Notes under the pieces: generated by a model | Told to the model about the DNA's origin: nothing | Database searches by the model: none | The model's input: the letters and a program-made list of their open reading frames with translations, nothing else | Shown: positions 31,333 to 47,095 of the stretch, one piece after another | Layout of the letters: every line of letters starts with the position of its first letter | Numbering within the stretch: position 1 is the first letter of the stretch | Sequence record: MG592671.1 | Reading direction: 5' to 3' (one strand) | DNA length: 64,000 bases | Made by a program: the position numbers and the translations under genes

Positions 31333-32505
31333 ATGTCACAACTATTGACTGAATCTAAGTGGGCTACAGTAAAAGACAAACTAACTGAAGGCCTTAATGG
31401 TACTAAGAAGCAAGTAATGGAAACTGTACTTGACAACCAACGTAAGCAACTTATGGAAAGTGCAACAAATGGTTCTACTTCTGCAGGTAACATTGCTACA
31501 CTAAACAAAGTAATTCTTCCAGTAATTCGTCGTGTAATGCCAACTGTTATTGCAAACGAAATCATGGGCGTACAGCCAATGACTGGCCCTGTTGGTCAAA
31601 TCCACACTCTACGTGTGCAATATGCTGACAACGCTCCAGGTGTTACTGCTGGTGAAGAAGCACTATCTCCATTCAAAATCGCTAAAGCTTATTCAGGCGA
31701 GACTGGTTCAAGCAATACAGATCCACAAGCTGCACCAACATCACAACTTGAAGGTGTTATGGGTCGCCGTATGAACATTCGTGTTCTACGTGAAACTGTA
31801 GAAGCTAAATCACGTCGTCTATCTGCTCGTTGGACTATTGAATCTGCACAAGATGCTCAATCTCAACACGGTATTGATGTAGAAGCTGAAGTAATGGCTG
31901 CTCTTGCGCAAGAAATCACTGCTGAGATCGACCAAGAAATGCTACACAAGCTTCGTGCACTACCAGGTGCTGCTGCTGTTGAATACGATCAAGCTCGTGT
32001 TACTGGTGTTGCAACATTCGTAGGTGATGAGCATGCTGCACTTGCAACTCTTATCAACCGTCAGTCTAACCTTATTGCACAACGTACACGTCGTGGCGCT
32101 GGTAACTGGGCTGTTATTTCTCCAGCTGTTCTAACTGTTCTTCAGTCTGCAACTACTTCTGCGTTTGCACGTACAACTGAAGGTTCTTTCGAAGCACCAA
32201 CAAATGTTAAATTTGCAGGTACTTTGAATGGTACAATGAAAATTTATGTTGATACATATGCTGATGATCAAGAAGATGTTCTTATCGGCTACAAAGGTTC
32301 TTCAGAAGTTGACGCTGCTGCGTTCTACTGCCCGTATATTCCACTAATGAGCTCAGGCGTTGTTATGGATCCAAACACAGGCGAGCTTGTAGTTTCATTC
32401 CTTAGCCGTTACGGTTACGTTGAACTGAAAGATTCCACGAGTTCATTAGGGAATGCTGCGGACTACTTGTCTAAGATTTCTGTAGCCAACTTGGCATTCT
32501 TTTAA
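31333..32505 (+). CDS. gp23: Major capsid protein (gp23-like)
   Basis: PVIRRVMPTVIANEIMGVQPMTGPVGQIHTLR, EAEVMAALAQEITAEIDQE, TRRGAGNW, AAFYCPYIPL; optimized codon usage; TATAAATA at 31271. Confidence 0.96.
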   Translation: MSQLLTESKWATVKDKLTEGLNGTKKQVMETVLDNQRKQLMESATNGSTSAGNIATLNKVILPVIRRVMPTVIANEIMGVQPMTGPVGQIHTLRVQYADNAPGVTAGEEALSPFKIAKAYSGETGSSNTDPQAAPTSQLEGVMGRRMNIRVLRETVEAKSRRLSARWTIESAQDAQSQHGIDVEAEVMAALAQEITAEIDQEMLHKLRALPGAAAVEYDQARVTGVATFVGDEHAALATLINRQSNLIAQRTRRGAGNWAVISPAVLTVLQSATTSAFARTTEGSFEAPTNVKFAGTLNGTMKIYVDTYADDQEDVLIGYKGSSEVDAAAFYCPYIPLMSSGVVMDPNTGELVVSFLSRYGYVELKDSTSSLGNAADYLSKISVANLAFF

Positions 32506-32548
32506 TTTTTCCGCTGCAAAAGCAGTAGAATTATTAAGAAATCTTATA

Positions 32549-32575
32549 AAAATCCCGCTTCTTGCGGGATTTTTT
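32549..32575 (+). terminator. Terminator after major capsid gene
   Basis: AAAATCCCGC-TTCTT-GCGGGATTTTTT. Confidence 0.85.
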
Positions 32576-32625
32576 GTGACTATGTAAAACTATCATTATA
32601 AAGTGTTATAAAAAGTTATAATTAT

Positions 32626-33081
32626 ATGAGGTCTACTATGCGCATCTGCACTCTTGAAAATACAGAAAAACTACAACGAGAACTACAGACTGCGCTCTCT
32701 CGTCTGGGTGGCGGGTATTGGAATGGCCACTCATGTTTCGATCAAATTCAGCATATCCTAGAAGGTCGAGCTGCGAAGTACATTATACGAAGAGAGAAAT
32801 ACTCTCGTATACGAGGGCGTCAGTTCGATCGTGCCAAAACTGTTATTCGTAAATTCAAAAAACAATTTGCTAAACATCTTTCTGAGCACACCGAACAATA
32901 TATGAATTTAAATTTTGGTGATATATGGGTGAGACACGCTTATAATTACCTTAACGACAATATTCATCCCCAGCAACAAACCCGCCTTCTTACAAAGATG
33001 CCCTCTCTTGTTGAATACAAACGAGTACGAGATTTTAAGCTCAAATACAAACGTAAAGTAAAGAGAGGTCCTGGGAAATGA
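32626..33081 (+). CDS. Hypothetical basic protein
   Basis: 151 aa ORF after -10-like TATAAT elements; no recognised motif. Confidence 0.55.
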   Translation: MRSTMRICTLENTEKLQRELQTALSRLGGGYWNGHSCFDQIQHILEGRAAKYIIRREKYSRIRGRQFDRAKTVIRKFKKQFAKHLSEHTEQYMNLNFGDIWVRHAYNYLNDNIHPQQQTRLLTKMPSLVEYKRVRDFKLKYKRKVKRGPGK

Positions 33082-33395
33082 GTAGGAATCTCGTTATAAA
33101 GGAACTGGTTAACAACCCAGTTCATAAATGCATTCGTGGGAAACACAACCCATTTATACTTCTTCCTATATATGAAAATCACGATCTCTATGAAGAAGTA
33201 AAGTGTAACTACCGTGAAGCTATCAAAAACACAGAAGAAGAAATTTCTAGTTACCATTCTAATATTGCTGGGTACAGAATTAAACTACAGGAAATATATC
33301 GCAAACTTGATAATCTTAATGGATATCTTATAACTCTAGAAGAATTCGCAAGAGAACTCCCTGATGATGAGTTAATGACATATGAGCTATTATAA
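33078..33395 (+). CDS. Small helical protein, TYELL-array member
   Basis: NPFILLPIYENHDLYEEVK; ends LPDDELMTYELL. Confidence 0.7.
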   Translation: MSRNLVIKELVNNPVHKCIRGKHNPFILLPIYENHDLYEEVKCNYREAIKNTEEEISSYHSNIAGYRIKLQEIYRKLDNLNGYLITLEEFARELPDDELMTYELL

Positions 33396-33687
33396 ACAAG
33401 AATTGTCTGGCTTTAAAAAACTTCGCGTTATAGAGGCCTTTATTGCAAAAGATGAAGATGTTTTGTATGATAAACTTGATAATATCATGATCTTAATTGC
33501 GCACTTCAAATTAAAAGCACAAGAAAAACCTTCAAGAATCTGGAGTACGTCTGATCATTATTTGCAAGAACGTGTTAGACAAGCACAGAGTACCCTTATA
33601 TGGGTAGACGAGATTATATCTAAACTCGATGAAGAAGTACAAGCCACATTAGCATTATTAGGCTACGAGCCTTACATAAGGAAATAA
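33382..33687 (+). CDS. Small helical protein, divergent TYELL-array member
   Basis: Near C-term LDEEVQATLALL; ATG inside the TYELL codons of the previous gene. Confidence 0.65.
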   Translation: MSYYKQELSGFKKLRVIEAFIAKDEDVLYDKLDNIMILIAHFKLKAQEKPSRIWSTSDHYLQERVRQAQSTLIWVDEIISKLDEEVQATLALLGYEPYIRK

Positions 33688-33689
33688 AA

Positions 33690-34346
33690 ATGAAAACACG
33701 TTTATTGATCTGTCAGGAAGCAGAACTAAAGGAACTAAACAGGAAACATCATAAGCATAATAGCATTGCCAACCTGAAGGCAGAGCTAGAAGAACTTGGC
33801 GCTCAAGATGTTTTACCACTAAAAGCATACAGTAAAACTAACGGAATCTCTGCAAATGATGTAAAGTTGATGTATCTTCTCGGTGAAAAATCTGTTGTTT
33901 TTAAGGCAGAAGGCACTGATGAAGATTTTGATAACCTTGAAGTTTATCTTACTCTATCTGATATGGATTTCCGTATGTATCCATTCCCTAGTGAAGAACT
34001 AAAAAACAAGTTTAAAGAGACGTTTATTCCTATCCTTAAAGAGTGGAATAAAGAAGCGCACTTGATCGTCCAGTACTGGGCATATCGCTCCAACAGGGAA
34101 AGCAGCTACATTCATATGTCTGATAAAAAATGGCGAAAGCAGCTCTCGTTAATAACTGAGTTGCGTGATAAGAGCGGCCCTGCTGATTCTTATGATGCTG
34201 AAGCACGTGAAGGAAAACTATTCAGCGAGTTTACTAAGAAATTTGCTGCTGATGTTCCATCAGGAATGAAAACATTCGGTGATTTGAATCGTTACATGTA
34301 CCAAACTGCTGAATTCTTTGGATTAGATGTCACAAGGAAATACTAA
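33690..34346 (+). CDS. Hypothetical protein
   Basis: 218 aa ORF with RBS, tightly packed in operon. Confidence 0.6.
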   Translation: MKTRLLICQEAELKELNRKHHKHNSIANLKAELEELGAQDVLPLKAYSKTNGISANDVKLMYLLGEKSVVFKAEGTDEDFDNLEVYLTLSDMDFRMYPFPSEELKNKFKETFIPILKEWNKEAHLIVQYWAYRSNRESSYIHMSDKKWRKQLSLITELRDKSGPADSYDAEAREGKLFSEFTKKFAADVPSGMKTFGDLNRYMYQTAEFFGLDVTRKY

Positions 34347-34600
34347 TGGGCATATATTTTACTAGTGCATATAGAAAATGGAAGCTTGAGATTGATGAGG
34401 GTATTGAGAAAAATGCTGATTCTCTAAGAGAGCAACGTGATACACTAAACAAGTGGATATCTCGCTACACTCAAGGATTGAAGGACGGTACCCCTAATGC
34501 TGGAATGAATCTAGAAGTCTGTATGAATACTAGAGATAAAATGGATTCATATCTAGAATCATTATCAGAAGCCGATAGAATAACCTACGAATTATTGTGA
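34346..34600 (+). CDS. Small helical protein, TYELL-array member
   Basis: Ends LSEADRITYELL. Confidence 0.7.
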   Translation: MGIYFTSAYRKWKLEIDEGIEKNADSLREQRDTLNKWISRYTQGLKDGTPNAGMNLEVCMNTRDKMDSYLESLSEADRITYELL

Positions 34601-34607
34601 GAATACT

Positions 34608-34940
34608 ATGGTAGATCAAGCGGATAAGGTTAATGAGATATACAATGCATTGTACGTTCAAGAGAATCCATTTAAAACTTACCCTTTAATGGAGAATATA
34701 GAGCTGTACAGTGAACTAAAGAAACTCATCAATAGTGATATAATTTCAGCACTACATCTTGAATCTAGAATAAAAAGTTCGTTTAATACCTATATGAGTA
34801 TGGTTGACTATTGTGAAGCTAACCACATGTTGGCAGCAGCACAACATGATGTAGATCTAAGTAACATTTTACTTGAGCGCTTATCTAGCTACACACAAAA
34901 CTTCAACGAGGAAGATAAGGTAACATATGAACTTTTATGA
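34608..34940 (+). CDS. Small helical protein, TYELL-array member
   Basis: NPFKTYPLMENIELYSELK; ends FNEEDKVTYELL. Confidence 0.7.
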   Translation: MVDQADKVNEIYNALYVQENPFKTYPLMENIELYSELKKLINSDIISALHLESRIKSSFNTYMSMVDYCEANHMLAAAQHDVDLSNILLERLSSYTQNFNEEDKVTYELL

Positions 34941-35277
34941 TATACTTAACTCTAAAAAAGTTAAAATATTATCTTTGTGGTATTCTGGAAATACGCCATT
35001 CGATTTATTTCCGATATCGGAAAATATGGATTTGTATATTGATATTATTCGTGACATAAACATGGAATATGAGAACGCATTATTAGCGTATAATAACGCG
35101 TGTGTTTATGAATGGGGTAGACACGATCCCTTAAATCTACCTAAAGCAACTGTAGAGTTAAGTAGCTGTAGGCGTATCGCTAGATATTTTGACCAGTTTG
35201 TGACTAGTTTACCCATTGAGGATAGAGTAACTTTGGCATTGTTTGATGAGTGTGTTGTGCGAGGTTCTTATGATTGA
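34927..35277 (+). CDS. Small helical protein, TYELL-array member
   Basis: TPFDLFPISENMDLYIDII; near C-term LPIEDRVTLALF. Confidence 0.7.
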   Translation: MNFYDILNSKKVKILSLWYSGNTPFDLFPISENMDLYIDIIRDINMEYENALLAYNNACVYEWGRHDPLNLPKATVELSSCRRIARYFDQFVTSLPIEDRVTLALFDECVVRGSYD

Positions 35278-35587
35278 AAAAACCCCTGAGTATATAATAG
35301 AAGCCTTATCTCGTGGCGTAAACCGTTTCAATTTTGATCCGCTGTATTCTGATTTGGAAGGATGGGCAACAGTAAAGAACCATCTAGAAATGGAAATTGT
35401 ATCGCTAACATCAGAGATTATCTCTAGAAAAAAGAGTATTATGTTGGCAAAAACTAATAAACAGCAAATTATAGCCAAAGCTATGTATGGCGTAACTGAC
35501 TCTCGTTTAAAATGTTTTAAACGAGCAAAAGTAAATATTCAAAACTTTTTGTCTGACGAGTACATAGTAACATGGGAGCTTCTATAA
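35270..35587 (+). CDS. Small helical protein, TYELL-array member
   Basis: Start moved to ATG 35270 (RBS GAGGT at 35261); ends LSDEYIVTWELL. Confidence 0.65.
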   Translation: MIEKTPEYIIEALSRGVNRFNFDPLYSDLEGWATVKNHLEMEIVSLTSEIISRKKSIMLAKTNKQQIIAKAMYGVTDSRLKCFKRAKVNIQNFLSDEYIVTWELL

Positions 35588-35606
35588 ATATCTCAAAGGA
35601 GATAAT

Positions 35607-35960
35607 ATGGAAACTTACAAAATACTAAAGTGGGTAGGTATTGAAACGTGGCTACTTACTGAAAGTGGGGAAATCCAAGCCTGTCCTGATGATCTCATCT
35701 TGCAAGAAGGCAATAAAATTACCACAGGGTTTATGTCGGAATATCTGTCAGATGACTCAGTGGTAATATTAACACAGAACACTGTCTTGTACGAATGGGT
35801 AGATACTCCTAGTAAGTACGAAGAGATATACAAAACAGATCTAGAGCGTAGGAATCCCAATGCTCCGGTAATGTGTACTGTTGATCGATCAGGTCCTACA
35901 CTTCAATCCCAAAAGGCTAGGGATGTTGCGACTAACTTTGGCGTAACTTTTGGTAAATAG
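35607..35960 (+). CDS. Hypothetical late protein
   Basis: TATAAATA at 35583 and AAGGAG RBS. Confidence 0.65.
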   Translation: METYKILKWVGIETWLLTESGEIQACPDDLILQEGNKITTGFMSEYLSDDSVVILTQNTVLYEWVDTPSKYEEIYKTDLERRNPNAPVMCTVDRSGPTLQSQKARDVATNFGVTFGK

Positions 35961-40375: not shown

Positions 40376-40663
40376 ATGTCAAATATTTTCGATAAGAGTT
40401 TTAAGCCTGAAGAAGTTTCTAAACTAAAAACCATTCTTGACACGTGTCGAGTAAGCTTGCAGCATATCAAGGATATTCAAGAGCAAATGAAAGACGATAT
40501 TAGAGAAGTGGCTGAAGAATTAGATATTAAGCCATCTGAAATCAATCAAGCAGCGAAGGCACTTTTTAAAGAAGACATTGCAGCGAAACGAGAGAAGCAT
40601 GAGGCAGTTGAAGAGTTGCTTGAAATTGCAGGCTACGATACGTCTGGTCCTACAGACGTATAA
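40376..40663 (+). CDS. dsDNA-binding protein (T4 DsbA/GapR-like)
   Basis: IKDIQEQMKDDIREVAEELDIKPSEINQAAKALFK pattern; upstream of DNA polymerase. Confidence 0.6.
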   Translation: MSNIFDKSFKPEEVSKLKTILDTCRVSLQHIKDIQEQMKDDIREVAEELDIKPSEINQAAKALFKEDIAAKREKHEAVEELLEIAGYDTSGPTDV

Positions 40664-40828
40664 AGATATAGTATATCGAATTTAATACCAACATTACGTG
40701 TGGTCACTCCCACACGTAATGTTACAATAGAGTACACTAAAGATGTAACGTATTCTGCAAATAGTATTTTGTGGAAAGTAGATATTACACTTTTTGAAAA
40801 ACCACATATAAATTACAAGGAGCGTAAT

Positions 40829-43699
40829 ATGTATATTGACGCAATGTTTGATCGTAAGAAGGACTGTATTCGTGTCGCTGAGCGTATTAATGGTAAGAGA
40901 CTTTTACGAGATATTAGGCCAGTATACGAGTTTTATGCAGAAGATCCCCAAGGAACTATTACCTCAGTAACTGGTAAAGCTGTAACTCACCACCGTTTTT
41001 CATCAAATAAGGACATGAAACTAGCCGCAGCGTCATTTAAATCCCAAGGATTGGACGTTTTCGAATCAGATGTAAATGTCCTTAATAAGACACTAGCATA
41101 TGAATATAAGAACGAACCAGCACCAAATCCTAATATTGCGTTCTTCGATATTGAAACTGATTTTGATAAAATACGAGGTTACGCTCCTGTAGATAATCCG
41201 TTCAATAAGATAACTGCTGTATCTTTATATTTGGATTGGAAATCAGAGTTACTGATGTTGGCGTTAAAGCCACAAGCAATGTCACAGGCAGAGGCAGAAT
41301 CCATTGTAGGGGGATTTGATTCCCACGAAGGAACTGTTATTTTATGTCCTGATGAAAAACATATGTTAAATTTATTTTTCCAACTTATTGAAGACGCTGA
41401 CATTCTTTCAGGGTGGAACAGTGAGTTCTATGATATCCCATATATGGTAAATCGAACTGAAATGGTAATGTCAAAAGCTGACACTACTCGTTTTTGTTTA
41501 TGGGGACAGACGCCAAAGCCTAAAACAGTTGAGAAGTTCGGCACTGAGTCACCAACTTATGATTTAGTAGGACGAATCCATATGGATTATCTGGCGTTGT
41601 ATAGAAAACACACATATCAGGAATTGCCATCGTATAAACTAGATGCAATCGGCGAGCGCGAGGTTGGAGAGAACAAGGTTGAGTACGAGCGAACTCTAGA
41701 TCACCTGTACAACTTTGAGTTTGGTAAATTCTTAGAATACGGTTTGCAGGATAGTAAACTGTTAAAACTTCTAAATGACAAGCTAGATTACATTTCACTA
41801 CATAACCAAATGGCACACGATGAATCAGTTTGTATATCAACAACTATGGGATCAGTTGCTCTGATTGACACAGCTATTATCAACGAGATACATACATGGG
41901 GCGAGGTTGTTTTTGATAAAATGATTAAGCCAGAACCAGAGCATGGCGCAGCAGGTGCTTGGGTAGCAGACCCAGTTAAAGGCGTGCACGATTATATTGG
42001 GTGTATTGATTTAAACTCTCTATATCCGTCAGTGCTAAGATCACTAAAGATGTCAACTGAGTCTATTATCGGTCAAGTACGTCATATTTTCACAGATGAG
42101 CATTTAAAATCAGCTATTGACAAGCAACGCTTAGAGTTCAAAGGTCGACCTGAGAACTTCAAACCTAGTTGGACTGAAGCATGGCACGGACTTTTTGCTT
42201 GTATTGAACATACAAAAATTATGAATCAAACTGACGATGATATGATCATTGATCTAGAAGATGGCACAACGTTAGAGATGACTGCATCGGAAATTTATGA
42301 TTTTATCTTTAGTGAAGGGTCGAACATTGTTATTAGTGCTAATGGGACATTATACGACAACACAAAAAGAGGTGCTATCCCAAGCATACTTACACGTTGG
42401 TATCAAGAACGACAGCTAATGCAACGCGCAGTGATGGATTTTACGAGATTATCTGGATTTTCAGAAAATGAAGATGAGCGTGGGATGACTGATGATCAGA
42501 TATCAGTTGTTTTAAATGGATTTAATAGTAAGCAGTGGATAGAACACAATGTTCCAGAATTGACTTTGGAAAAACGAGATGATAATAAGTGGTATGCTAC
42601 TGATGGAAAACTGGCTAAAGTGAAAGCGGCATTCTACAAACAGCAACAACAAATTCGAAAAATCTTGTTGAACTCACTATATGGTGCATTACTTAATAAA
42701 GGGTCTCGATTTTTTGATCAGCGTTTAGGACAATCAGTTACTCTTACTGGGCGTAGTATTACTAAGCACATGGCATGTAAGATCAACGAAGAAATGACTG
42801 GCAACTTTGATTATGTTGGGGGACCAATCGTATACGGTGACACGGATTCAGTGTACTTCAGTGTCCAAAAATATCTAAATGAGCAAAATGATACTACTGC
42901 ACTGTCTAAAGAGGATGTTGTTGATCTTTACTTACAAGTTGCTGAAAATGTTGACGAATCATTTCCAGGATTTATGAATAGTACATTTAATACTGGATTA
43001 GGGAATGGTAAGATTATTGCCGCAGGTCTTGAAATTGCCGGCACTCGTGGACTGTTCTTGAAGAAAAAGCGTTATGGTATTTTGAAATATTGGGAAGACG
43101 GCTTCCGTTTAGATACTGGTGGCAAACCAGGAAAACTAAAGGCTATGGGTATGGAGATTAAACGTTCCGATACTCCTAAGTATATCCAAGATCACCTAAG
43201 TGACGTGTTCACTGATCTATTAGTGGGATCAGAAGCTCCTAAGCTAAAAGAAAAAGTTATGGAGTTTAAGAAGCAGTTTAAGGTGATGGACTCGTGGAGA
43301 AAAGGTGCTCCTAAAACAGTGAAAAACCTAACCAATAGAACTAAAGAATACAGAGATACTGGAAAATGCAAAGTAGGTCACGTACTAGCTAGCATCCATT
43401 GGAACGATTTGAGAAAAATGAATAACGATCACGAATCTCCTGAAATTATTGACGGAACGAAAATAGTAGTGTGTCAGTTAACAACAAACCCTTTAGGTAT
43501 GGATTCAGTTGCGTTTCCAGCCGAAATGATAGATAGGTTACCAGAATGGTATACAACACTGCCATTTGATGTTGGTGGTATGGAAGAAGCCATCTTAACA
43601 AAAAAACTAGATAATTTATTTGGTATTTTAGATATGGATTTAGGAATCTTCGAAGATCCTAACTCAGCAGCAAATAATACAGATTTATTTGACTGGTAG
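40829..43699 (+). CDS. gp43: Family B DNA polymerase (gp43-like)
   Basis: Exo I FFDIETDF, Exo II GWNSEFYDIPY, DLNSLYPS, KILLNSLYG, YGDTDS, KKRY. True start likely ATG 40829 (AAGGAG RBS) rather than GTG 40700. Confidence 0.95.
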   Translation: MYIDAMFDRKKDCIRVAERINGKRLLRDIRPVYEFYAEDPQGTITSVTGKAVTHHRFSSNKDMKLAAASFKSQGLDVFESDVNVLNKTLAYEYKNEPAPNPNIAFFDIETDFDKIRGYAPVDNPFNKITAVSLYLDWKSELLMLALKPQAMSQAEAESIVGGFDSHEGTVILCPDEKHMLNLFFQLIEDADILSGWNSEFYDIPYMVNRTEMVMSKADTTRFCLWGQTPKPKTVEKFGTESPTYDLVGRIHMDYLALYRKHTYQELPSYKLDAIGEREVGENKVEYERTLDHLYNFEFGKFLEYGLQDSKLLKLLNDKLDYISLHNQMAHDESVCISTTMGSVALIDTAIINEIHTWGEVVFDKMIKPEPEHGAAGAWVADPVKGVHDYIGCIDLNSLYPSVLRSLKMSTESIIGQVRHIFTDEHLKSAIDKQRLEFKGRPENFKPSWTEAWHGLFACIEHTKIMNQTDDDMIIDLEDGTTLEMTASEIYDFIFSEGSNIVISANGTLYDNTKRGAIPSILTRWYQERQLMQRAVMDFTRLSGFSENEDERGMTDDQISVVLNGFNSKQWIEHNVPELTLEKRDDNKWYATDGKLAKVKAAFYKQQQQIRKILLNSLYGALLNKGSRFFDQRLGQSVTLTGRSITKHMACKINEEMTGNFDYVGGPIVYGDTDSVYFSVQKYLNEQNDTTALSKEDVVDLYLQVAENVDESFPGFMNSTFNTGLGNGKIIAAGLEIAGTRGLFLKKKRYGILKYWEDGFRLDTGGKPGKLKAMGMEIKRSDTPKYIQDHLSDVFTDLLVGSEAPKLKEKVMEFKKQFKVMDSWRKGAPKTVKNLTNRTKEYRDTGKCKVGHVLASIHWNDLRKMNNDHESPEIIDGTKIVVCQLTTNPLGMDSVAFPAEMIDRLPEWYTTLPFDVGGMEEAILTKKLDNLFGILDMDLGIFEDPNSAANNTDLFDW

Positions 43700-43829: not shown

Positions 43830-44549
43830 ATGCAAGATATTCTAAGAGATGTTGTTCGCTCAACTAATGGTTTCGGATTTGAAGTAATTAAAATCACTGC
43901 AACTGATGAAGGTTGTACAATTGAAGCTGTAAACGGCGAACGCACTGTAATTATGAAAGGCAAAACAAAGGCGCCTGTTGCAGAACTAACTGGTACTTTT
44001 GGTATCTCAAACCTAGGCTTTTTGAATGGCATGTTGAATCTCCCAACGTATCAAGAAAGCTCTGCAACTGTTAGTATGTCTACAAATGCTAACAATGAAC
44101 CAGAAGAGATCGTATTTAAGAATGGCCGTTCTAAGTCAGTTTACCGTTTAATGGCAGAACGAGCAATTGTGAAACAGCCAAATTTCAAAGCACCAGCTTG
44201 GGACGTAGAGAGTACCCCAACTGTTGAAGCTGTTAAAACGTTTAAAGCTCACGCAAGTGTTTTTGGAGCTATTTCAGCACGATTCAAGCCTGAAGTACAA
44301 GGTGATGAGCTAGTATTTAATATTGGTGATAGTGCAGCGTCTAACCATAGCGATGTTGTTGTATTTTCAGAAACAGACGCTACTGGACTAAAAGGTGGCT
44401 ATGAATATCCGATTGACAAAGTACAGACTGCTCTAGGCATGTGTGCAAATGCTGATGTTGAACTAAAATTCAGCGAGAAAGGCGTTGCCCAAATTGATGT
44501 TGATACTGGCTTACTTGAGCTAAGTTTTGTGTTTCCTGGCCACGCCTGA
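43830..44549 (+). CDS. Sliding clamp (gp45-like)
   Basis: 239 aa, follows polymerase; FGISNLGFLNGML, KSVYRLMAERAI typical of T4-like clamps. Confidence 0.7.
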   Translation: MQDILRDVVRSTNGFGFEVIKITATDEGCTIEAVNGERTVIMKGKTKAPVAELTGTFGISNLGFLNGMLNLPTYQESSATVSMSTNANNEPEEIVFKNGRSKSVYRLMAERAIVKQPNFKAPAWDVESTPTVEAVKTFKAHASVFGAISARFKPEVQGDELVFNIGDSAASNHSDVVVFSETDATGLKGGYEYPIDKVQTALGMCANADVELKFSEKGVAQIDVDTGLLELSFVFPGHA

Positions 44550-45304: not shown

Positions 45305-47095
45305 ATGAAACCAGCAAAGCAAGACGCAGCTAGACTAAAAATACATAACGATTATAGACAGCGTCGTCCGTTAGATAAAGGACTTGAAGCACAAACTGTT
45401 GATCTAACAGTGAATCAAAAAGATTTTGCAGTGCATTTGCCTGCGAGCATGGAGATACCATTCAATATGACTCGCTGGGGTGAGAATGAACAAACAGGCC
45501 AACGTTGTGTTGATTTTATGCAAAAAGATAACGGTGCGTTTTACTATAATTGGTCATTGTACTCCGCTGGTCATGCAAAGAATGTGCCAACCCTAATTAA
45601 GAAAGATTTGTTTATCAACAGGGATCCTGATGGTATCTTGTTTGGAGATTCTGGCGGATTCCAAGCAGCAGTTGGATCAGGAGTGCATGGAGACATGGAT
45701 TGGTCACATATCCCGTCAGTGGATGATTTATGTCAAAAAACACTAGATTGGCTAGAAGCGACATCTAACTATTCAATGATTCTCGATTTACCAACATTTG
45801 TGTTAGGTAAAAATGATAAGATTGTATCTCACGAGCAATGCCTACAGCAGACAATGTATAATATTGAATACTTTCTAGCGCATCGAGAGCCAGGTAAAAC
45901 TAACTTCTTGAATGTACTACAAGGCCTTGATGAGCACGACACTGATGAATGGTATAACGCTGTTAAGAAATTTAATAACCCTGAAACTGTACTAGATCAA
46001 GAATATTACTACATTCCATTAGCACAAATGCCAAACCCCATTGAGCCTAAAGAGGTTGCTAAGCCAGAAAAGCTCTCTGAAAATAGTTCTTTAGCTGAGG
46101 AAGAGAAATTTAAAGAAGATGAGAAAAAGTACAAAAAGTATCGAGTCGAGTTGAATTTATATAAAAAGGCCTTAAAACGCAAACCGGAAACTTTAGCTAG
46201 TATTGTTGATATTGACGGTTTTAAGTACATTAAGGCAAAATCACCATGGGTAAAAAAGTTCGGTTCTAACACAAAGCTAGGAGACCGAGCACTTGAAGGA
46301 TGGGCAATGTCAGGACACATGGTACATAATGTTGATTTAGCGTTACGTCAATTCTGCATTTTATTGCGTGACGGGAACATCGATGATCGACAACACTGGG
46401 TACACATGCTAGGATTAGCAACTATGAAAGCTGCTGTAACGCTAACAGCGATACAGCGTAAGATTCGAACTCTGCCTGGTTGTGAAAACTTCGTCATTAG
46501 TTATGATAGTTCAAGCGCATCACAATTTATGCAGTTTGGCAAGATGATTATCGGAGCATACTCTGATCCAGTATCTAAGGTGGCTACATTCACGCTATGG
46601 AAGCCACCAGCAGACTATGGTTCGTGCGGCTCTAAGCAGTTAATTAAAGATTCATTAGCATACCATGATGCTAATCAGCCTAAGGAAAAGGAACTTAGGA
46701 CTGATTTAAAGAAAAATGAGATACGATTTGAAACTTACGTGATGAATAATATCAGTGTTGGTGATTTATGCTATAAGTTACCCACAGAGCCAGGAAATCG
46801 CCCGTGGGATACAACATCTAATAGTTTTGTTTACTGTCAAAATGTAGAAGCTATTATTCGTAGTTTTCAATGGATTAACGAAATGGCAGATGCTGATAGG
46901 ACAGATGTAGTAGAGCCGGAACTACTTGATTTTAAAAACAGAATCATACATGAGATTTTTTCTGATCCAGATCCAGTACAGGCAGTGACGCACTACCAAA
47001 CTATAATTAGGCCACTGTTCGCAAAAGAGATTATACCTAATAAGTGTAGTTCGCATCACAATGTTCTAAATAACAATGATTTATTTGGGTGGTAA
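45305..47095 (+). CDS. dpdA: tRNA-guanine-transglycosylase-like DNA-modifying enzyme (DpdA, probably DpdA2-type)
   Basis: TGT-fold motifs FGDSGGFQ, MILDLP, NVLQG, GWAMSG, HMLG, SYDSSS; no TGT CxCxxC zinc site seen; clustered with que genes. Confidence 0.8.
   Translation: MKPAKQDAARLKIHNDYRQRRPLDKGLEAQTVDLTVNQKDFAVHLPASMEIPFNMTRWGENEQTGQRCVDFMQKDNGAFYYNWSLYSAGHAKNVPTLIKKDLFINRDPDGILFGDSGGFQAAVGSGVHGDMDWSHIPSVDDLCQKTLDWLEATSNYSMILDLPTFVLGKNDKIVSHEQCLQQTMYNIEYFLAHREPGKTNFLNVLQGLDEHDTDEWYNAVKKFNNPETVLDQEYYYIPLAQMPNPIEPKEVAKPEKLSENSSLAEEEKFKEDEKKYKKYRVELNLYKKALKRKPETLASIVDIDGFKYIKAKSPWVKKFGSNTKLGDRALEGWAMSGHMVHNVDLALRQFCILLRDGNIDDRQHWVHMLGLATMKAAVTLTAIQRKIRTLPGCENFVISYDSSSASQFMQFGKMIIGAYSDPVSKVATFTLWKPPADYGSCGSKQLIKDSLAYHDANQPKEKELRTDLKKNEIRFETYVMNNISVGDLCYKLPTEPGNRPWDTTSNSFVYCQNVEAIIRSFQWINEMADADRTDVVEPELLDFKNRIIHEIFSDPDPVQAVTHYQTIIRPLFAKEIIPNKCSSHHNVLNNNDLFGW

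Follow-up and report, generated by a model that had tools for sequence, protein, structure and literature searches.

Six small genes (A to F) downstream of the major capsid gene of Vibrio phage 2.275.O._10N.286.54.E11 (MG592671.1, 348,911 bp; host Vibrio cyclitrophicus), a marine Rak2/GAP32-like jumbo myovirus, encode proteins of 84-116 amino acids (aa) that end in or near a common tail of the type VTYELL. They were analysed within a window of 64,000 nt of this genome (window position 1 is genome position 284,912), in which the 2.5 kb flagged by the original prediction match the phage record at 100%; positions below are those of the window unless called genomic. The genes are real and related, and all six are annotated as coding sequences in MG592671.1. 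We consider it likely, with a probability of roughly 60%, that they represent an orphan, expandable accessory family in a variable-site operon, in which the tail is an integral closing helix of the fold that is kept at the level of the peptide.

The six genes and the wider family

The motif [VIMA]-T-[YWL]-[EA]-L-[LF] forms the exact C-terminus of A, C, D and F and stops 8 and 10 residues short of it in B and E, respectively. All six tails listed in the original prediction are present in the sequence and are far above chance expectation: a loose tail pattern lying no more than 12 residues from the C-terminus occurs in only seven of the 1209 open reading frames (ORFs) of the phage, six of them in the array, versus a mean of 0.36 and a maximum of 3 among composition-shuffled ORFs (200 shuffles). 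The N-terminal motif NPF/TPF...P..EN..LY, also described previously as common to three ORFs, is seen in A, D and E, and a weaker version of it occurs in F. Judging from their sequences, the array proteins are soluble and mildly or mostly acidic, and they have no membrane or signal features. F most likely starts at 35270 rather than at the annotated position 35246, because the former equals the N-terminal methionine of its metagenomic relative P0007.

We examined paralogy with a leave-one-out scheme in which a hidden Markov model (HMM) was built from five members and the sixth was scored against all 318 ORFs of the window (Table 1). The expanded, diversified gene family that had been proposed is supported for A, D, E and F. 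C, the best match outside its training set, is marginal, and B is unsupported as a full-length paralog; it shares the tail only, and its hhalign alignment to the family covers no more than the last ~34 columns.

Beyond the array, the family proved to be wider than first noted. The tail is the end of a module of ~20 residues, with the consensus L-[SP]-[DE]-E-[DE]-x-V-T-[LYW]-x-L-L over 23 tails, and a tail scan of all ORFs followed by HMM searches identified seven further small proteins (91-111 aa) carrying this C-terminal module at three other loci of the phage. True module matches all lie within 10 residues of the C-terminus, and the best of the reversed-sequence decoys reached only E ~1. These other loci are runs of small genes beside nucleotide-metabolism genes (DHFR, ribonucleotide reductase) and have no T4-type late-promoter consensus (TATAAATA) nearby. 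The array at 111 kb comprises four genes of 110-111 aa with 4-nt ATGA overlaps upstream of ribonucleotide reductase, and its proteins have N-terminal parts rich in Cys and aromatic residues and the tails ..VTLGLGGWE, ..VTVTLLGFSL and ..VTLTLLGASL (the last in two genes).

When profiles were compared with hhalign, the family matched the 140-kb pair with a probability of 93% over 73 columns, that is, beyond the module, and it matched the 28-kb gene and the 111-kb array with probabilities of 88% and 71%. Provisionally, these values suggest that the thirteen proteins form one very diverged superfamily rather than a set of unrelated domains with a common tag; we call this reading provisional because the profiles are shallow. 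A fourteenth candidate (genome 136932-137216), which ends in ..HLALMGL, was unsupported by hhalign and was left out. Genome 137216-140042 (locus L115) holds a run of ~13 tandem ORFs of 65-101 aa with overlaps of 4-20 nt, eight of which begin with MTE[ED]..; they share a conserved Trp-rich middle and form a small paralog family unrelated to the VTYELL-tail family.

Table 1. Features of the array locus and other module-bearing genes of the phage (window positions unless marked as genomic), with E values from the leave-one-out HMM analysis.
Feature	Position	Strand	Description	Leave-one-out E
Major capsid gene	31333-32505		directly upstream of array	
Terminator	32544-32579	+	intrinsic, hairpin and U-run; 3' of capsid gene; upstream boundary of array operon	
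up	32626-33081	+	151 aa, very basic, pI 10.4; first gene of operon; 4-nt overlap with A	
A	33078-33395	+	105 aa, ends MTYELL; tail codons 33378-33392; family member	9e-8 (supported)
B	33382-33687	+	101 aa, ATLALL plus 8 aa (..ATLALL-GYEPYIRK); start within TYELL codons of A	2.4 (unsupported as full-length paralog)
X	33690-34346	+	218 aa; inside array, outside family	
C	34346-34600	+	84 aa, short, ends ITYELL; tail codons 34583-34597	0.011 (marginal)
D	34608-34940	+	110 aa, ends VTYELL; tail codons 34923-34937; family member	4e-11 (supported)
E	34927-35277	+	116 aa, VTLALF plus 10 aa; start within TYELL codons of D	8e-6 (supported)
F	35270-35587	+	105 aa, ends VTWELL; tail codons 35570-35584; 8-nt overlap with E	7e-5 (supported)
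TATAAATA	35583-35590	+	T4-type late-promoter consensus; overlaps F stop; 16 nt before ATG of next gene	
dn1	35607-35960	+	117 aa, conserved; downstream boundary of array	
Module-bearing gene beside DHFR	genome 28084-28389		ends ..LSDDERVTLALMGY	
Second tandem array	genome 110950-112275 (locus L021 10950-12275)		four genes; tails e.g. ..LPDEDQVTLTLLGASL	
Pair of module-bearing genes	genome 140086-140678			

Peptide and DNA at the gene ends

The original prediction left open whether the terminal motif is a docking or degron peptide or a reusable translational-coupling joint that lets cassettes be stacked. In favour of the motif DNA as the functional unit, serving as a joint for coupling or recombination, the A/B and D/E junctions do have the identical 14-nt overlaps that had been described (33382-33395 and 34927-34940), with the downstream ATG inside ACA-TAT-GAR in both cases. 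The acidic codons before the motif are also purine-rich and, in D/E, resemble a ribosome-binding site. However, this overlap is used at only two of the seven junctions of the operon, identical residues within the last 12 codons are encoded by the same codon in only 34-36% of comparisons between members, and the gene ends contain no direct repeat of 14 nt or more. In relatives, moreover, the peptide is retained although the overlap is absent: the A and B orthologs in one contig (L119) are separated by a 14-nt gap, with B preceded by its own AAGGAA ribosome-binding site, and the gap between an A-like and a C-like gene in a second contig (L117) is 95 nt. The same overlap geometry is found by chance at the stop of an unrelated DHFR gene elsewhere in the genome, which ends in ..VYERR, so the 14-nt overlap is a side effect of TAT-GAR (Tyr-Glu) two codons before the stop. 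Unlike T4-type variable-region genes, the array genes also lack repeated intergenic DNA cassettes. At the level of codons and junctions, these comparisons show that the tail is kept by selection on the peptide and not on the DNA; the coupling joint is therefore rejected, and we regard any role of the motif DNA as the functional unit as extremely improbable.

An AlphaFold model of A (11-sequence alignment; mean predicted local distance difference test score, pLDDT, 86.8; predicted template modelling score, pTM, 0.74) is a compact helical bundle, in which short N-terminal helices and the conserved NPF loop precede a pair of long antiparallel helices (residues 35-61 and 67-92); the chain then turns over three residues at the [SP]-x-E-[ED] cap and ends in the tail helix (96-104; pLDDT ~90). 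Among viral structures, this model is matched best by the independent BFVD models of E, C and F (probabilities of 0.97, 0.82 and 0.51, respectively). Fold searches with Foldseek and VIA-align otherwise returned only generic helical bundles, at Z values of up to 9.3 that are below the informative level for helical proteins, and ESM Atlas gave no usable lead.

The residues at and beyond the tail follow a pattern of their own. Tyr or Trp occupies position -4 in ten tails, and every one of these has LL as its last two residues. The other 13 tails have Leu, Val, Ala or another residue at this position; in 12 of them Gly follows, in two L119 genes as Met-Gly, and E has Asp-Glu instead. In 8 of these 13 tails an aromatic residue comes right after that Gly. 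This pattern suggests that one aromatic side chain is required, whichever side provides it, and would fit a role in packing. From the model of A, we infer that the tail helix is an integral, core-closing part of the fold, a reading that we favour over a docking peptide.

Hydrophobic LL-type C-termini resemble some protease recognition tails, and the tail might be a C-terminal degron through which the lifetime of all these proteins is kept short and under protease control. This reading is a poor fit, since in 13 of the 23 family tails the motif is not at the very end and 2-10 further residues come after it. In addition, the conserved unit is a module of ~20 residues with helix-capping features rather than a tail of 3-5 residues, and the motif is modelled as a packed helix, so we consider a degron very unlikely. 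The module also resembles the first helix of the helix-turn-helix of sigma region 4 or LuxR-type proteins (L-[SP]-x-x-E-x-x-V-x-x-L), but there is no Pfam match (E up to 1) and no room for a recognition helix, because the proteins end 0-10 residues after the module helix.

Relatives and copy-number variation

An HMM search of 1.84 billion representative proteins recovered the window's own five members and four outside proteins (E from 3.5e-13 to 8.5e-5). Three of the latter are A-type (ending in MTYELL, VTYELL and FTWDLL) and one is F-type (ending in VTWSLL), and all four retain the NPF loop and an extreme C-terminal T-[YW]-x-L-L. The A orthologs (P0008, P0009 and P0010) show 34-43% identity overall, with the tail retained, and the F relative (P0007, E = 3.5e-13) begins at the equivalent methionine and has its stop directly after VTWSLL. 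Three of these relatives were traced to TARA Oceans metagenome assemblies or to a public sequencing run, and the fourth comes from a 1.2-kb contig of another ENA assembly.

Three contigs of relatives are syntenic with the array site. L119 (3,089 bp) carries, in this order, three 70-75-aa paralogs ending in ..LLMGW or ..VLMGW, a basic protein resembling the first product of the operon (up; a weak relative, E = 2e-4), the A ortholog, a B ortholog, a D/E-like gene and the two conserved small genes dn1 and dn2 that also follow the array in the window. Identities to the window proteins are 52% for dn1, 45% for dn2 and 34% for B (E = 9e-17), and the presence of a B ortholog at the same position indicates that B is a real conserved gene. 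L118 (TARA) holds an X-like gene (25% identity over 183 aa, E = 9e-15), one A-like gene, dn1 (36%) and the collar gene (75%), and in L117 an A-like gene is followed by one for a C-like protein of 87 aa that ends in VTYELL. Because these contigs have one to three family genes versus six in the window, the site between the flanking genes holds anywhere from one to six family genes; the copy-number variation for which an HMM search had been suggested is thus found at the array site itself.

Further searches added little. A word-indexed search of 5.8 billion proteins returned the phage's own proteins alone with the 6-sequence family alignment, its own proteins and P0007 only with the 11-sequence alignment, and only the dn1 of the window and its two orthologs (in L118 and L119) with a dn1 alignment. 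Nothing beyond the phage itself was found when 50,697 phage records were searched by tblastn with D and one member of the 111-kb array, or when IMG/VR and JGI metagenomes were scanned for patterns from X, the collar protein and the A-type and dn1 alignments. No family member occurs in 80 capsid-gene neighbourhoods of relatives, and the family and module HMMs had no match in the complete genomes of GAP32, BF and Munch. Relatives carry other small genes between the capsid gene and a dn1-like gene. Searched against Pfam, PHROGs, NCBIfam and PDB sequences, the six proteins, their neighbours and the seven other module proteins all remained below the curated thresholds. As far as these searches reach, the VTYELL-tail proteins are an undescribed orphan family, found only in this Vibrio phage and four marine contigs.

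The phage itself is readily placed: its major capsid protein shares 80-82% identity with those of GAP32, BF, CBB, fHe-Yen9-04 and other Rak2-like jumbo myoviruses (~350 kb), and no closer relative was found in phage records or IMG/VR. Rak2-like phages have tandem small-protein families of their own, and 22 paralogous ORFs have been reported in phage CBB (PMC5259590). The array resembles these families in belonging to the same phage group, in consisting of tightly packed, diverged paralogs with one short motif and in varying between relatives. The EExxFQxS[TL] family of enterobacterial Rak2-like phages, however, has no detectable homology to the VTYELL-tail family: the family and module HMMs gave best E values of only 0.03-0.24 in Salmonella phage Munch, which is noise level. 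Munch has 24 such ORFs of 129-283 aa, in 23 of which more than 30 residues separate the motif from the C-terminus. By these comparisons, the VTYELL-tail family is the same kind of object as the known small-paralog arrays of jumbo phages, but it is a different family.

Operon, predicted role and competing explanations

The local gene order is portal, a small protein, prohead protease, scaffold, capsid gene, array and two conserved small genes, beyond which are tail-collar and fibre genes, DNA polymerase and a putative clamp gene. The operon reads up-A-B-X-C-D-E-F, with successive junctions of -4, -14, +2, -1, +7, -14 and -8 nt. Given these tight junctions, the terminator upstream (RNA fold of -17 kcal/mol, z = -5.9 versus shuffles) and the TATAAATA before the next gene, the unit from up to F looks like one operon. 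The gene up has an alternative start at 32638 with a GAGG ribosome-binding site, X had no family, Pfam, PHROG or NCBIfam match, and dn1 has weak relatives directly 3' of the capsid gene in enterobacterial relatives.

As previously stated, the stop codon of F (35585-35587) lies inside TATAAATA. The accompanying claim that this element is a late promoter is less firm; we infer that it may act as one, and an ATAAATA motif lies upstream of structural genes in the relatives CBB and GAP32 (PMC5259590), but the motif is unenriched in the window (7 found versus 8.6 expected) and is not kept at the corresponding spot in L118 or L119. In L119 (1797-1804), TATAAATA is likewise formed by a stop, that of the B ortholog (..GGG TAT AAA TAA), with a gap of 180 nt behind it, perhaps by coincidence. 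In the window, an AT-rich segment upstream of the first array gene and 3' of the capsid terminator (32592-32625) contains the late-promoter near-matches TATAAAGT and TATAAAAA as well as TATAAT.

The region is fully covered by contigs assembled from four public RNA-Seq-registered libraries of two studies; they agree with the window except for 1 nt that is deleted in one contig of run X5. For runs X1 and X3, the mean depth of the capsid-gene contig is 10-20 times that of the array contigs. These contigs show that the region is present in those libraries.

The setting of the array might indicate that its products are head-associated proteins, either internal or ejected proteins or assembly factors, with the tail serving as a capsid-targeting or scaffold-binding signal. 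The array is directly 3' of the portal, protease, scaffold and capsid genes, it lies on the same strand and upstream of the late-promoter-like TATAAATA and the tail-fibre genes, and the RNA-Seq-labelled contigs cover it together with late genes. The internal proteins of T4 are likewise small, variable and linked to anti-defence, and the array shares with them (IPI, IPII and IPIII) and with T4-type accessory genes a small size, variability, lineage specificity, a position among structural genes and a varying number of genes. However, a strong terminator lies between the capsid gene and the array, the seven other module genes belong to clusters without a late appearance and without a neighbouring TATAAATA, and the family is missing from relatives with the same head genes. 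T4-type capsid-targeting signals, moreover, are N-terminal and are removed at L/I-x-E sites, whereas the conserved element here is C-terminal and offers no L/I-x-E site. The array proteins have no N-terminal leader common to the members, L-x-E triplets are present but none is at an aligned position, and no targeting sequence with a protease site is recognised. The position of the array in the head module speaks for a virion or assembly role, which we nevertheless consider unlikely.

In a second alternative, the tail would dock all these proteins to one hub protein, with the variable bodies acting as adaptors or inhibitors. Its most concrete form is a sliding-clamp tail like that of T4 gp33, a late-transcription co-activator whose C-terminal tail tethers it to the gp45 clamp. 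T4 gp33 (read from NC_000866) has 112 aa and ends in T-L-D-F-L-L, and in its size, helical nature and acidic-hydrophobic C-terminus (TLDFLL versus TYELL) it resembles the proteins ending in T-[YW]-[ED]-L-L, which likewise occur in a phage with T4-type late promoters. The window contains a putative clamp gene (43830-44549; phrog_223, E = 7e-5), some tails end in Gly plus an aromatic residue (LLMGW, LALMGY), recalling the polymerase tails of this phage group (FFGW, LFDW), and no gp33 or gp45 homolog was detected in the Rak2-like phage CBB (PMC5259590).

Several results speak against docking, however. The VTYELL-tail family and gp33 show no sequence or profile similarity (hhalign probability of 0.5% with the 11-sequence alignment; phmmer with gp33 against the phage ORFs gave a best E of 0.44, elsewhere in the genome), and the family is multi-copy. 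The phage's own polymerase ends in N-T-D-L-F-D-W and its DpdA-like enzyme ends similarly; neither end is TYELL-like, and a match between the family tails (T[YW]xLL or TLxLLG..) and the polymerase-type tails (NTDLFDW, NNDLFGW) was rejected. The tail helix of A is modelled as packed (pLDDT ~90) and not free, and the family is missing from relatives that also lack gp33. To our knowledge, thirteen competitors for one clamp would be without precedent. It thus seems improbable that the tail docks to one hub, and more doubtful still that the module is a portable docking helix that plugs at least 13 different small proteins into a single hub such as the phage clamp or, as gp33 does, RNA polymerase or clamp; if this were true, a marine jumbo phage would possess an exchangeable set of clamp- or polymerase-tethered regulators. 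Of the explanations in the original prediction, the docking-or-degron reading is thus currently disfavoured as well.

The polymerase (family B, 40700-43699) ends in ..NNTDLFDW and the 596-aa DpdA-like enzyme (45305-47095) in ..NNNDLFGW, and these are the only two ORFs of the phage with a tail of the LFDW/LFGW type; the DNA polymerases of related jumbo phages end in ..NTGFF-x-W. The putative sliding clamp (239 aa) is encoded between the two genes, and the DpdA-like base-swapping enzyme belongs to a preQ1 DNA-modification cluster. This arrangement suggests that the base-swapping enzyme may ride on the clamp via a polymerase-type tail. Upstream of the polymerase, a 95-aa protein (40376-40663) matches phrog_639, 'transcriptional regulator' (E = 3e-7), and is not found by phmmer with T4 DsbA (E = 2.5).

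In the accessory-family reading, which we prefer, a tightly packed operon would occupy a variable site, flanked by the terminator of the capsid gene and by the next of the conserved late genes. Four of the products (A, D, E and F), probably also C and, as a more remote member, B would belong to one superfamily of soluble, mostly acidic, helical proteins of ~85-130 residues that grew by tandem duplication and then diverged. Its signature would be a C-terminal helix-turn-helix module in which a helix with L as its last residue leads through the N-cap [SP]-[DE]-E-[DE] into a short final helix, x-V-T-[LYW]-x-L-L. This last helix would close the core of the fold and be retained by selection on the peptide, and the two 14-nt overlaps would be ordinary translational coupling, a by-product of the TAT-GAR codons for Tyr-Glu. 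The products are predicted to be dispensable accessory factors that act on host or phage proteins in the infected cell. Such a role is the most likely one in view of the copy-number variation, the absence of the family from GAP32, BF and Munch, the variable site, the occurrence of other members in clusters that do not look late and the soluble, mildly acidic nature of the products. The more specific suggestion of a role in host takeover or anti-defence is a guess.

Four points weigh against this reading. The array sits within the late structural block; a tail conserved across differing N-terminal parts is also expected of a shared docking helix; the model of D (five sequences, pLDDT 79) is weaker in its C-terminal third, with a poorly defined tail (pLDDT ~53); and the hhalign probabilities that connect the groups rest on very shallow profiles.

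Small, fast-evolving paralog families that nobody can yet name make up a large share of jumbo-phage genomes. One more such family is now precisely defined by its members, signature, fold model, relatives and copy-number variation, and the attractive idea that the DNA of its motif is a stacking joint has been removed. Both the phage and its Vibrio host belong to a culture collection for which host ranges are known, so that deleting the array and truncating the tail are practical routes to the function of such families.

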